DNA of 63,646 bases, counting the filler, from Olpidium bornovanus S191 (lineage: Eukaryota > Fungi > Olpidiomycota), in the NCBI GenBank assembly GCA_017911155.1. It is 25 parts of 25 records of this genome, joined end to end, with 100 filler letters (N's around TTAATTAATTAA, not from the genome) between each part and the next. Parts side by side here need not be neighbours in the genome. Positions count along the whole stretch, not along the records: positions 40,242 to 44,404 come from JAEFCI010000310.1; 24 more parts are not named here. One strand, written 5' to 3'. Position 1 is the first letter of the stretch. Each line of letters begins with the position of its first letter. Shown here one piece after another: positions 39,266 to 44,599 of this stretch. The notes below the pieces were generated by a model. That model was not told where the DNA came from, searched no databases, and saw nothing but the letters and a program-made list of their open reading frames with translations. The translations under genes and the position numbers were made by a program.

Positions 39266-40753
39266 GTTTGTTTCCCCCCCCCCCCTTTCCACATAAGAAT
39301 GGGGCGAACGATACTGACAACACGCGGGGGACGTTCCCTTTCCTGGTCCAGCAGGCCGTGGAGCCAGTGGGACGAAGAAACATTCGCGGAGGGCGACGCG
39401 GAGCTGGCGCAGGTTAGGAGTCGCGCAAGCGAACGGCGTTGGTTGGCAAGCCGGGGAAACTGCGGTTGTCCCGATTTTGGTCTCGAGCTTTTGCAATCTC
39501 ACAATGCGCGCGCCTCGGACAGCACTACTACGGCCGGGACATGACGCTGATGCGCCGCCCCCGCAGGCCGGGCCGCGGCAAGTGGGCGATCATGCACAGG
39601 CTGCTGCCCGCCCCGGAAAACCCCCGTCCCGACGGTTTCCTGGCGTCAATGGGGCAGTACTTTGCGGCGGATACGGCTTCCGGAAAAGCGGCGGGCCTCG
39701 TCGTCGCTGGATTGATGGTGGGTGGATTTGTTGGATATGTCAAGGATCGAAGTCGCGCTGCTCCATTTGAGCGTTCTGCGCGTACGCCAGTACGCGCAAC
39801 CCTTTCGTGAACTAACAGTGGTGCGACCGGTACCGCTCCAACACCGGTCCTCTTGATAGATTGTCAGCTGTACGGCGACTTGCTACCCATACGCGCCGTC
39901 CCCGGGTGTCTTCTATCCGGTCGTACTGCTGGCATTGGCCCAGCTCTACAGGTCAGTAGTCTTTCCCGAGTTTTGTCCCGTTTGCAAAAATCGTTTCGTC
40001 CGGCGAGGATTGTTGACGGTACACCGCAAACGAGTTGATGACGGCGCCTGGTTTTTCCTCTCTGTCATTACGCGGGAAGACCCGACCTGTTCTTCCCGCT
40101 GTTGGCGCCTGCGATCTACGTCGCGTTCCTGTTCGTCATGGNNNNNNNNNNNNNNNNNNNNNNNNNNNNNNNNNNNNNNNNNNNNTTAATTAATTAANNN
40201 NNNNNNNNNNNNNNNNNNNNNNNNNNNNNNNNNNNNNNNNNCCCCCCCGGGGGGGCTTTCCCCCCCCCCCCCCCCTCCTTCACGACTCACCCGGGTGCGC
40301 AGACCTTCAGAGGATCGCGGCGCATTGATGTTACTCGGAAAACTTGCCTCGTAAATTGACCGCGGCGACGGATCAGCAAGGAGCGCGCTGCGTTCAAGAC
40401 ACACACTCGGGCGTCCGCGCAGATCGCCAAGAGTGGGGGGGAGTCGGGGTGGTGGTACATTCGAGGGCACAGGCTCTTCGGATGATCAGGTTCCTCCAGG
40501 GCGGCGCCACCACCCCCTCCCCCACACATACACACACACACTCCCCCCGGCACGGCTGGAATCCCGTTCGTTTTCCGCACGCGCAGCTCCAGCGTGGTTC
40601 CGCGGGGCGCGCGAGGGGCTATTCTGCTGCCTTCCGCGCCGTTTTCGTTCCGCGGCATGCGCAGGCGAGCGGGTAAAGCCTTCTGCGGCCCGATTCACCG
40701 GCGGATAAGGGGGACGGCGCCCGGCGGGGCCGCTTCGGGCGCAACGCCGGGGG

Positions 40754-40801
<48 letters not shown>

Positions 40802-40942
40802 CGCGGGCAGGGAGGCGGCGGGGGTCCGGTTCTTGCCAAAGTCGTGTTCACGTGCCCGTCCGCTCCTCTTTCCCCCAACCCCCCCGCCAGTCGACTTCCT
40901 GAGGCAGAACTCTCGCGGGCCCCCGGGAAGCGACGACCGGGC

Positions 40943-40983
<41 letters not shown>

Positions 40984-43234
40984 CACGGCGGCGGCGGCAA
41001 GGACGAAGGACGTGCCCGAAGCGAAAGCCCGCGGGCTCCGCGTGCGCCCTCTCGCCGCCGGACGCGGACCGTCCGCCTCGGGGGGCGCGCGATCGCGATC
41101 CGAGATCGTCACCCGCGACGCGAACGCTCACACCGCCGGGGAGCAAAAGACCGCGCGCCCCGCACACACGCTCGCGGGCGCCGCTTTGCCGACCGCGGCC
41201 GCCGTTCCGCGCCCGGCGCCGCGCGCACGGGGCTTCCTCCTTCCCCCCCCGCCCGCGCGCGTCACCAACGTGCCGCCGTGAGAGAGGACAGCGCTCCCGC
41301 CTCCGCCCGGGGCCTTCGCCTTTTGCGACGGCTCAGCCCGCGCCCCGCGATCTGATCGCGGGACGACGACTCGCGAAGCGCGGCCCGCCGTCCTCGGCGG
41401 CCGCCCCGGCGCCGCGACGCCGACGCTGCCGACGAACAGTTGAGCGCACACGACTCGCGGCGCAGCGTTGCCGGCTGCCAGGCTGAAGAACTCCTTGCCC
41501 CGCCACGACTGCTCCTCCTCCCCCAGGCGGCTGAGCAACGAGAAGACAATCGGCCGGCTTTTGCCGCACGGTGCTTACGCACAAAACAGCGGGCTTTCTG
41601 CCTGGAACGCGGAACGATATGAAGGGGTGGCAACGCACTTTCGTCCAGGCGCTGCGCAGCAAAGGCAAGTTGAGTTCTTGACCGCCCGTGGCGCTGGCGA
41701 GTTTCAATATTTTCCATTTAAAAGACAAAACAGACTTTCCTTGGAAGGCGTAACACGACTTTATGAACTAAGTACGGAAAACTGCATCAATAACCGGCAG
41801 TCAACAAGTTGTTCGTCCGGTCCGAGATTATGTTGTCAAAGCCTATTCGAGAGCATTTATTTACGAACACCGTGAGTGCTGCAATTTCGTCCTCGGACTG
41901 TAGCCGCATGAACGCTAAACGCAACAACCGTTGAGAAGCGTTTGACTATGCGATATCCTGACGCGGTCAGGAAGGAAGCAGGGTGATGTTTGCACCACTC
42001 ACAGACCGTTTATTTGCATGTACCGACGGCAGAAGGCAAATGGGTTACACAGGAAATTGTATCCGGGGTGCTTTTTCCGGCATCGAAACACGAAGCATTG
42101 CAGTTCCCCTCCCGTCCTCCCACGCTCTCCTGAGGGTTAAATTACATTAGGTATTGCGTGATATGTCTTGCAGGGCCAGATGTAAATTGGATGTTAGATT
42201 TCACGAGTGTTGATGTTTGGACGCAATCGCTTTCCAGTGCCGGGCGGCGGGATAAAACTGCTCATGGAATGTTTGCCGGCCGCCGCGTCCAAGCGAACCG
42301 TGCGGTGCGGAACCCGCGAGCCTGCCGGAATGACGGTGCGGTCGGCGAGGACGTCAACCGTCGAACGTTAAAGAGCTGAGCCGCTCCCAATCCTATCGCC
42401 TCAGACAGTTTCCGATCTTGCGTAGAACGTCATTCTCAGCCTCGGTGAAGTAACGGTACATCGTTGCTGTTTTGGGCACTCCGCCGTCACGTCCCGAACT
42501 ATAAATACAAAGAACTCGGGAGCTTGCGCGAATCGGCATTGGGACGCTCTTGCAGTCGTTAAGCCATACGCCAGTTAAGCCAACCGTGTCCACATATTTT
42601 TCTGGACCCGAAGTTCGCCGTAGCAGCCGGAGACAAAGTCTCCGCGGGGCTGGCAAAAAAAGGCTGGTTCGGCGGCGCGGGGCGCATTAGCTTTTGCCCG
42701 ATTCGCGGCAAAACAAACTTCTCACCCGAGCGTTCGTCGCCGGGTGCCGCATCGTCCGTCGGGAAAAAAAAAAGAAGAAAAAAAAGAAAAAAAAAAACTG
42801 CAAGCGACCGCACGCGGGAAGCGCCCGGCGCCCAACATCTTTCCCGGCACCCAATGACGCCAGAAACAAATTGCGTCGTAGTTTTGCGGGATCGCCGGGG
42901 AAACCTTTTGTATAATCCGGAACGCGGGCGTCGCCTAAAACCGATCTAGCCGAGTATGAAAAAGGGGAGCCGCCCCGTCCTCTCGGCGCATTTCGTGCAA
43001 ACGAAGATGGCGTGAAATTAGATGCCCCCCGGCGCAGACAGACGGTGGGTGGCAAAAGAACCTCAGCAAAAGCGGCGGGGCATATAAGGAATGTCCCGGG
43101 GGCGAAAACCCCGGGCGACTCACGCACTCCCACCTTAGTTGCCGCAGAAAACATACCCGAGTCGCAGGGCATCTCCTCACCTCGCCCCGCACGTCCCTCC
43201 GGCGCGAGGGCAGCCCGGGACCATCTTCCTCAAC

Positions 43235-44404
43235 ATGCTCTCCATCAAGCCGCTGCTGTCGGGCCTTCTGGTACCGGTTCTCGGGCTGCTGATGGCGGCC
43301 CGGGGGGAACCGGATTTCATACCGTCGACTTCGTACCTGGCGAATTCGATTTTTCTGGACACGCTCCACCGGGTCGACCCGTGCCTGATCGAAGAAGGAA
43401 CGGTTTCCGGGGCGGAAGTGCCCCGCCGGATCCTGAGGTTTGGGACGCTCATAACGAACCGGGGGACGGACGATTACATCCTGGGCGCCGTGCCACGGAA
43501 CCGGACCGGCGTCATCCCGCCCTGGTGGGAGTTCAGCACCTGCCACGGTGAGTTTTTTGGCCCCCCGAGAAAGCCAGGGTTTCGCGAACGGTTTCTTACG
43601 GTTTCTTCGGGCGTCTTGACGGCTTTTTCTTTTGTTGACGCGGCGCATTGACCTTTTCCCCCGGCACGCCCCTCCTCAGGCCATTGGGTACGCCAGCCGG
43701 CGACATTGAATTCCCGCGGGCGCCGACCGGTGACGTGTGAGCCACGGCTGACTGGCAGGCGCTTTACACTTTTTTCCGCAGCACTTCCTCGGGTACGCGC
43801 GTTACGCGCTGGTCGAGTACATTGACCCTCAAACTCGGGTAAGATAATCGGGAGCGAGGGGCGGAAGGGGGGGGAGGGGGGAGAAGGGGGGAAAAGGGAG
43901 CGGGATTGGTTGGATTATGGAACGTTTGCGAGCAGCTTTGGACTAACGGAAGAGACGGGATGACCGAGCAGCCGAGCACGGAAAACCTTACGATTGTCGC
44001 ACGCGGCCACAAAATGGGGTTCTGCGTCTCGGACCTCTTGGTAAGCCGACGGCTCTTATTTTATTTTTTATTTTTTTTTTTTTTTTCCTTACCGGCTAAT
44101 TGAGGAGTCGGGCTCTTTCTTTCCTTTTTTTTTCCTTCTTTTCTGCCGGCATTCTCACGGGCGCCCCGCAGTGCTCCACAGGGGTGCAACCAAAATTTAC
44201 TTGCACGTACCAGGGGATCAGCGCAAACTGCGGCGACATCTACCACGCGATGGTCGGTGAAGATGAGTGTTCGCGAGAGAAGGGGGGTGGTCGCAGTTCG
44301 CGGTGTCCAGGGAAAATTTTCTGGAAGCTCAACTCCGGCCCCGTTATCTTATCTATAAAAAAAAAACACCGCCCCTGTAAACCAGCTGGACGGCCAGTGG
44401 ATCG
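43235..44404 (+). CDS. LOX: Secreted lysyl oxidase (LOX) domain protein, at least 6 exons, truncated by gap
   Basis: Exons 43235-43547, 43680-43687, 43782-43838, 43936-44040, 44172-44252 and 44386-gap give a signal peptide, PDF, RRILRF...NRGTDD, WEFSTCHGHWH, RGHKMGFC, QGISANCGDIY and LDGQWI. Confidence 0.9.
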
Positions 44405-44599
44405 NNNNNNNNNNNNNNNNNNNNNNNNNNNNNNNNNNNNNNNNNNNNTTAATTAATTAANNNNNNNNNNNNNNNNNNNNNNNNNNNNNNNNNNNNNNNN
44501 NNNNATTTCGATGACGGGGGGATTTTATGTCGGCGTGAAGAAGTAAAAAAAAAGGGGCAGAAAATCAAAACAAAAGGGGTCGAAGGGAAAATTGATGAA

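Follow-up and report, generated by a model that had tools for sequence, protein, structure and literature searches.

What would a lysyl oxidase (LOX) do in a fungus, when fungi lack both collagen and elastin, the substrates of animal LOX, and are remarked to be without a collagen-based extracellular matrix (ECM) (PMC4448552)? The question is raised by a gene in a 63,646-nucleotide (nt) stretch of DNA, the window, which joins 25 parts of the genome assembly of Olpidium bornovanus S191 (GCA_017911155.1). This gene, named here the Olpidium LOX gene, lies on the + strand at the right-hand end of the piece at positions 40242-44404 (record JAEFCI010000310.1), of which it is the single recognizable gene. 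An original prediction had described its product as a secreted, apparently catalytically intact LOX, which would imply an undescribed fungal cross-linking system or an effector acting on host proteins. Our analysis indicates that positions 43235-44404 very probably hold the 5' three-quarters of a spliceosomal gene of at least six exons, encoding a secreted single-domain LOX (PF01186) of the type known from chytrids and monoblepharids.

Family membership and catalytic residues

When searched against Pfam-A, the spliced protein has a single match, Lysyl_oxidase (PF01186), with a score of 75.2 bits (gathering threshold 20.4, E = 7.2e-21) that spans profile positions 51-156 of 204. This confirms the identity originally proposed. 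No other Pfam domain is matched at E <= 1 in the 182-amino acid (aa) product, and the copper amine oxidase domain, characteristic of topaquinone (TPQ) enzymes, is likewise unmatched. Among solved structures, human LOXL2 (5ZE3) alone was matched significantly, with E = 8e-10 from the single sequence and with E = 6.9e-41 when the Olpidium protein and ten relatives were used as a profile.

Residues were mapped using an 11-sequence family alignment (the Olpidium protein and ten relatives) together with a profile alignment to LOXL2, in which the roles of metal, lysine tyrosylquinone (LTQ), and disulfide residues are documented (PMC5899467, PMC9180022). C50, C103, H104, H106, H108, K140, C144, C160, and Y173 fall in invariant columns of the family alignment. 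H104, H106, and H108 correspond to the LOXL2 metal ligands H626, H628, and H630, and the copper site C103-H104-G-H106-W-H108 aligns with CHRHYH of LOXL2, an alignment that hinges on a predicted microexon. The two LTQ precursors correspond to K140 (LOXL2 K653, in RGHKMGFC, family motif GHKxxFC) and Y173 (LOXL2 Y689, in CGDIY, family motif C-x-D-x-Y), and D27 corresponds to D549 of the Ca2+ site, which is N-terminal and the only Ca2+ ligand column visible. All the motifs listed in the original prediction (WEFSTC-H-G-H-W-H, RGHKMGFC, CGDIY, and LDGQWI) were recovered in place in the spliced open reading frame (ORF). As judged from these alignments, the visible three-quarters of the predicted protein keeps every catalytic residue, and its intactness is limited to that visible part.

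The gene model comprises six exons separated by five introns of 94-133 nt, and all its splice sites are GT..AG. Exon 1 (43235-43547, 313 nt), which starts with the ATG and encodes aa 1-104 plus 1 nt, carries the leader and the N-terminal half of the LOX domain, including D27, C50, T56, C103, and H104 (codon 43544-43546), and ends at the donor CACG/gtgagt, the slash marking the junction. Next comes an 8-nt microexon, GCCATTGG (43680-43687), flanked by cctcag/ on its 5' side and /gtacgc on its 3' side, which completes Gly105 and then encodes His106 (43682-43684) and Trp107. Exon 3 (43782-43838, 57 nt) opens with H108 (43782-43784), followed by FLGYARYALVEYIDPQTR. Exon 4 (43972-44040, 69 nt, PSTENLTIVARGHKMGFCVSDLL) carries the LTQ lysine K140 (44011-44013) and C144, and exon 5 (44172-44252, 81 nt, CSTGVQPKFTCTYQGISANCGDIYHAM) carries C150, C160, C169, and the LTQ tyrosine Y173 (44241-44243). 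The start of exon 6 (44386-44404), encoding LDGQWI with G179, is cut at the edge of the piece. The spliced product of 182 aa thus reads MLSIKPLLSGLLVPVLGLLMAARG..WWEFSTCHGHWHF..ARGHKMGFC..NCGDIYHAMLDGQWI. All exons are free of in-frame stops, and the contrast between a G+C content at third codon positions (GC3) of 0.80 in the exons and an overall GC of 0.54 in the introns is a clear coding signal. The donor of intron 5, ATG/gtcggt, is weak, yet it gives the exact spacing of the family, Y-x3-L-x-[C]-Q-W-I. A possible TATA box or core promoter element, TATAAGG, is seen in the sequence on the + strand at 43083-43089, 152 nt 5' of the ATG.

The N terminus consists of K5, a hydrophobic core (aa 6-22), and then AARG, with Kyte-Doolittle values of 2.1-2.65 over 11-aa windows, in keeping with the hydrophobic leader predicted originally. 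This signal-peptide-like leader (43235-43306, aa 1 to about 22/24) makes secretion of the protein a well supported prediction. Homology to the catalytic domain begins at about aa 25, straight after the leader, and homologues bear comparable leaders. Neither the alignment nor Pfam reveals a propeptide or SRCR domains in the visible 182 aa.

Small exons and cysteine pairs

The H-x-H-x-H motif is present only when the 8-nt exon is joined between ...TGC CAC G and CAC TTC..., so that the central copper-ligand histidine, H106, is encoded on a microexon. Among the candidate exons that keep the frame in the 234-nt gap, only 43680-43687 yields the G-H-W of the family, and the pattern AG-NN-CAY-TGG-GT occurred in 61 of 200,000 shuffles of that gap (p about 3e-4). 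The homologue from Rhizophlyctis rosea has the identical sequence CHGHWHF. For three relatives (Rhizophlyctis, Hyaloraphidium, and Gonapodya), the annotated exons were located on the corresponding DNA. In Rhizophlyctis, an intron interrupts that Gly codon one base further on (L002 3558/3643); in Hyaloraphidium, there is an annotated 5-nt microexon (L001 3450-3454) three residues downstream; and in Gonapodya, a 14-nt exon (L003 4504-4517) lies just upstream. Very small exons near the copper motif are therefore characteristic of these genes, and the predicted microexon is credible.

The visible part of the protein contains six Cys in all, and these account for three of the disulfides of LOXL2: C50-C103 (C573-C625), C144-C160 (C657-C673), and C150-C169 (C663-C685). 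In the remaining bridge, C579-C695, both partners are replaced, by T56 (43400-43402) and G179 (44392-44394), although both Cys are kept in all ten aligned relatives. The LOXL2 bridge anchors ES1, a helical segment, to the core of the domain, and ES1 lines the space through which K653 is proposed to reach Y689 (PMC5899467). Two relatives, the Gonapodya-like JGI proteins P0003 and P0082, have lost another pair together, C663/C685, and still match PF01186. The C579-C695 bridge is auxiliary, neither catalytic nor family-defining. That the cysteines have gone as pairs (T56/G179 here, C663/C685 in P0003 and P0082) argues for selection acting on a folded protein, not for decay. More generally, the two cysteines of a LOX disulfide seem to disappear together. 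An equivalence of C50 with C579, which a pairwise phmmer alignment to LOXL2 gave, was rejected. It reflects a 6-residue slip, which arises because the second Cys is missing in the Olpidium protein; the profile alignment gives C50 = C573 and T56 = C579.

These features bear on whether the locus could be a pseudogene or decaying copy, or a partly wrong gene model, so that there would be no active LOX. Truncation at the edge of the piece, dependence of the model on so short a microexon and on a weak intron 5 donor, the missing, otherwise nearly invariant disulfide, and the lack of any identical or close protein in the collections searched would all fit such a reading. On the other hand, the open frame, the uniform GT..AG sites, the GC3 value, and the retention of all visible catalytic residues argue against it, as do the paired loss of the cysteines, the exact restoration of G-H-W by the microexon, which chance rarely provides, and the microexons annotated at the same spot in relatives. 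We consider a defective gene very unlikely.

Relatives, origin, and surroundings

With exon 1 as the query, HMMER was run exhaustively against 1.84 billion representative proteins and returned 77 matches, none of which exceeds 48% identity. The best named relatives are all zoosporic fungi (Chytridiomycota/Monoblepharidomycota). They include proteins from Irineochytrium, Nowakowskiella, Rhizophlyctis, Quaeritorhiza, and Phlyctochytrium, as well as Chytridium lagenaria KAI8852583.1 and a Cladochytrium replicatum protein (both "Lysyl oxidase" in GenBank), Zopfochytrium polystomum KAI9357007.1 ("Lysyl oxidase-domain-containing protein"), and a Blyttiomyces protein ("Lysyl oxidase 3"). Monoblepharidomycota are represented by Hyaloraphidium curvatum KAI9005565.1 and Gonapodya. 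Over the full 182 aa of the 11-sequence alignment, identity to chytrid and monoblepharid LOX is 42-47%. With at most 47% identity over 182 aa to anything found, the predicted protein appears rather divergent. No close relative of exon 1 emerged from a metagenome scan, and a word-indexed homologue search found no relatives with the spliced protein alone, whereas an alignment query did find some. Two matches were rejected as LOX relatives, P0001 (1526 aa, the top match) and P0030 (792 aa), which are translated tandem simple repeats; these repeats align over and over with the leader part of the query.

A crude bootstrapped neighbor-joining (NJ) tree (143 columns, 82 sequences) groups the named chytrids together at 67% bootstrap support, and the Olpidium protein falls outside this clade. 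The nearest named relatives are chytrid proteins, and the tree sets the Olpidium protein, weakly supported at 30% bootstrap, beside the named chytrids. The two environmental proteins that group with it, P0009 and P0042 (from ENA/JGI/Logan contigs), are LOX proteins of ~270 aa. Their CLSG motif is followed by an insertion and they end in a hydrophobic helix, suggesting a LOX subtype that is anchored in the membrane. The Olpidium protein may have a similar C-terminal anchor beyond the edge of the piece.

Could the gene therefore be non-fungal, contributed by another LOX-bearing eukaryote (an amoebozoan or other protist) or by bacterial contamination? The tree position with P0009 and P0042 and the mere 42-47% identity to any chytrid protein would be in line with this. 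However, the best-scoring named or JGI eukaryotic proteins (P0006, P0078, P0002, P0003, and P0079) are chytrid or chytrid-like, and the intron/microexon placement at the copper motif resembles that of chytrid and monoblepharid genes. Since the gene has five spliceosomal introns, a bacterial origin is excluded. Overall, we regard a non-fungal source as unlikely, and a zoosporic fungus or a near relation of one as the likeliest origin.

Several points weigh against our reading of the locus as a fungal LOX gene of known type. The final ~60-70 aa of the LOX domain lie outside the piece, which is cut at 44404, just after QWI; relatives run on past QWI for ~60-70 domain residues (DITD...FPE..NN), and, of the six Ca2+ ligands known from LOXL2, four (E722, D724, N727, and N728) fall in the unseen part. 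The description of the enzyme as catalytically intact is accordingly upheld for the metal and LTQ residues of the visible part and does not extend to this C-terminal portion, where a later stop, a frameshift, or an added domain may follow. The 8-nt microexon and the intron 5 donor GTCGGT are predictions, and read-through of intron 5 stays open to the edge, in a frame that lacks QWI. Bacteroidota LOX are 40-46% identical over 157 residues, nearly equal to chytrid LOX, and the NJ tree sets the Olpidium protein with P0009 and P0042 as sister to the chytrid clade with just that 30% bootstrap. Finally, the literature searched holds no evidence of LOX activity or of a LOX substrate in fungi.

Some side observations concern the same sequences. 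Were intron 5 retained (region 44253-44404; ORF 44100-44456), no stop would interrupt the frame before the piece ends, but the QWI strand would be lost, and an isoform retaining this intron may exist. The Bacteroidota proteins (P0016, P0018, P0019, P0046, and P0083) are 600-1000 aa long, many with type IX secretion system (T9SS) sorting domains, and their likeness bears on the scenarios of LOX transfer from bacteria to eukaryotes discussed by Grau-Bove et al. (PMC4448552).

The 3 kb upstream of the gene (40242-43234) contain no tRNA, their sole Rfam match is far under threshold, and none of the ten longest ORFs reaches the Pfam cut-off. Because this region shows only homopolymers, simple repeats (one of them trinucleotide), and a very GC-rich stretch, we see no second gene or partner upstream. 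The tracts include C16 (40260-40275), A44 (40754-40797), (ACG)15 (40943-40987), and an A-rich run (42764-42797); within the gene, a G-rich run (43856-43898) lies inside intron 3 and a T-rich run (44056-44086) inside intron 4. Such long homopolymers are unusual in DNA with 60-78% GC and may mark assembly-prone or nucleosome-excluding regions. There is also a step in GC upstream of the gene, from 72-78% at 40842-41591 to ~48% at 41592-42191, and neither part has an ORF that reaches the Pfam cut-off. A comparison of the genes flanking LOX in three chytrid cases revealed nothing shared, so there is no conserved context that would hint at the substrate.

Predicted function and comparison with known LOX

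By analogy with characterized LOX, the Olpidium enzyme would be secreted and then loaded with Cu(II), after which Y173 and K140 would form LTQ by Cu(II)-dependent self-processing. Primary amines would then be turned into aldehydes, with H2O2 and NH3 as by-products. Such extracellular amine oxidation is a well supported prediction. The likeliest amines would be the side chains of lysines in extracellular proteins of the wall, cyst, or adhesive, and the resulting aldehydes would condense into cross-links; we infer a role in cross-linking wall proteins. Three considerations favor peptidyl lysine as the substrate. The active site of LOXL2, with its copper site and Y689 solvent-exposed, suits protein substrates (PMC5899467). 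In cyanidiophyte red algae, a secreted LOX accompanies the walled/endospore state: Cyanidium secretes a LOX-like protein (PMC6508830), and cyanidiophyte LOX is expressed mainly in cell-walled diploid cells (PMC13353863). In addition, the Olpidium enzyme is predicted to be exported.

The main rival on the substrate is an active enzyme that oxidizes free or small primary amines (polyamines, amino acids, amino sugars, or aminoglycoside-type compounds) rather than protein lysines, with a role in nitrogen scavenging, in producing H2O2 against competitors, or in detoxification. Indeed, a recombinant archaeal enzyme, HTU-LOX from Haloterrigena turkmenica, is Cu-dependent and sensitive to beta-aminopropionitrile (BAPN), and has a relaxed specificity that covers taurine, glycine, aminoglycosides, polymyxin, and lysine polymers (PMC6452851). 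The Olpidium protein is a bare catalytic domain without substrate-docking modules and is nearly as similar to Bacteroidota as to chytrid LOX, both of which would be compatible with small substrates. Set against this, the residues corresponding to the exposed copper site and Y689 of LOXL2 are conserved, and LOX expression in cyanidiophytes goes with the cell-walled phase. Oxidation of free amines is a tangible possibility, albeit the less probable one.

A secreted effector that would modify host proteins or amines during parasitism, as the original prediction had suggested, finds no support in the piece. Predicted secretion and a relative from the algal parasite Quaeritorhiza haematococci would be compatible with it, but there are no effector-type features and no host-related context within the piece. 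Furthermore, most of the other named relatives come from free-living saprotrophic chytrids. An effector role is extremely unlikely.

The broader claim, that this enzyme implies an undescribed fungal cross-linking system, is not supported by the sequence. LOX were reported in the zoosporic fungi Spizellomyces punctatus and Gonapodya prolifera by Grau-Bove et al. in 2015 (PMC4448552), and GenBank contains chytrid entries named "Lysyl oxidase". Moreover, the sequence is silent on the substrate, and the archaeal enzyme oxidizes many free amines (PMC6452851). A bolder proposal would be that the Olpidium protein belongs, with P0009 and P0042, to an unsampled eukaryotic LOX lineage beside the chytrids, from a zoosporic fungus or a relation of one absent from the protein collections searched, in which ES1 is untethered and lysine-derived aldehydes cross-link wall, cyst, or adhesive proteins. 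This seems quite unlikely; if true, it would bring to light a lysine-aldehyde cross-linking chemistry never demonstrated in fungi. The role of LOX where collagen and elastin are absent is a genuine puzzle, which bears on the origin of the chemistry of the animal ECM. To this question the Olpidium gene adds one more divergent data point and does not open it in a new way. Complete, annotated chytrid LOX genes, e.g. in the transformable Spizellomyces punctatus, are the natural place for tests of function.

Beyond zoosporic fungi, the Olpidium protein can be compared with four groups of enzymes. The secreted fungal copper quinoprotein PPLO of Pichia pastoris is able to oxidize peptidyl lysine. It belongs to the copper amine oxidase family, in which TPQ is formed from a single Tyr, and its fold and cofactor are unrelated to those of LOX. 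The Olpidium protein matches only PF01186 in Pfam. Human LOX has the copper motif WEWHSCHQHYH. The copper amine oxidase family is also mentioned in the work on LOXL2 (PMC5899467), whose own motif is WIWHDCHRHYH, compared with WEFSTCHGHWH here. With animal LOX and LOXL1-4, the Olpidium protein shares the H-x-H-x-H copper site, both LTQ precursors (Lys and Tyr), the Ca2+-site Asp, and the disulfides equivalent to C573-C625, C657-C673, and C663-C685 of LOXL2, but it lacks the propeptide, the SRCR domains, and the C579-C695 bridge. Among prokaryotic LOX, the Bacteroidota proteins are alike in identity (40-46%) and a bare catalytic domain also occurs in this group, and HTU-LOX demonstrates that Cu dependence and BAPN sensitivity exist outside animals; the Bacteroidota proteins differ in their length of 600-1000 aa, extra domains, T9SS sorting signal, and lack of introns, whereas the Olpidium gene has five. 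Red-algal LOX (Cyanidium caldarium and Cyanidioschyzon merolae) are likewise non-animal, secreted, and associated with a walled/endospore state (PMC6508830, PMC13353863), which would make them the best available precedent for a role in the cell wall, although they come from a different lineage and are not among the closest sequence relatives found.

The closest counterparts are the chytrid and monoblepharid LOX. Like them, the Olpidium protein would have a signal peptide ahead of a single PF01186 domain, and it displays the same series of motifs (LPDF/PDF..DPCL..RFGT..CHxHWHF..GHKxGFC..QGI..C.D.Y..QWI). Their genes are also intron-rich, with introns or microexons around the copper motif. It differs from them in lacking the cysteines equivalent to C579 and C695, in having EPDFIPS instead of their LPDFxPD, and in being 42-47% identical and outside the clade of named chytrids in the crude tree. 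Taken together, these comparisons show a fairly ordinary additional LOX of a kind known in chytrids, not evidence of a new system, whose distinctive features are the loss of the C579-C695 pair and an 8-nt microexon bearing the central copper histidine.

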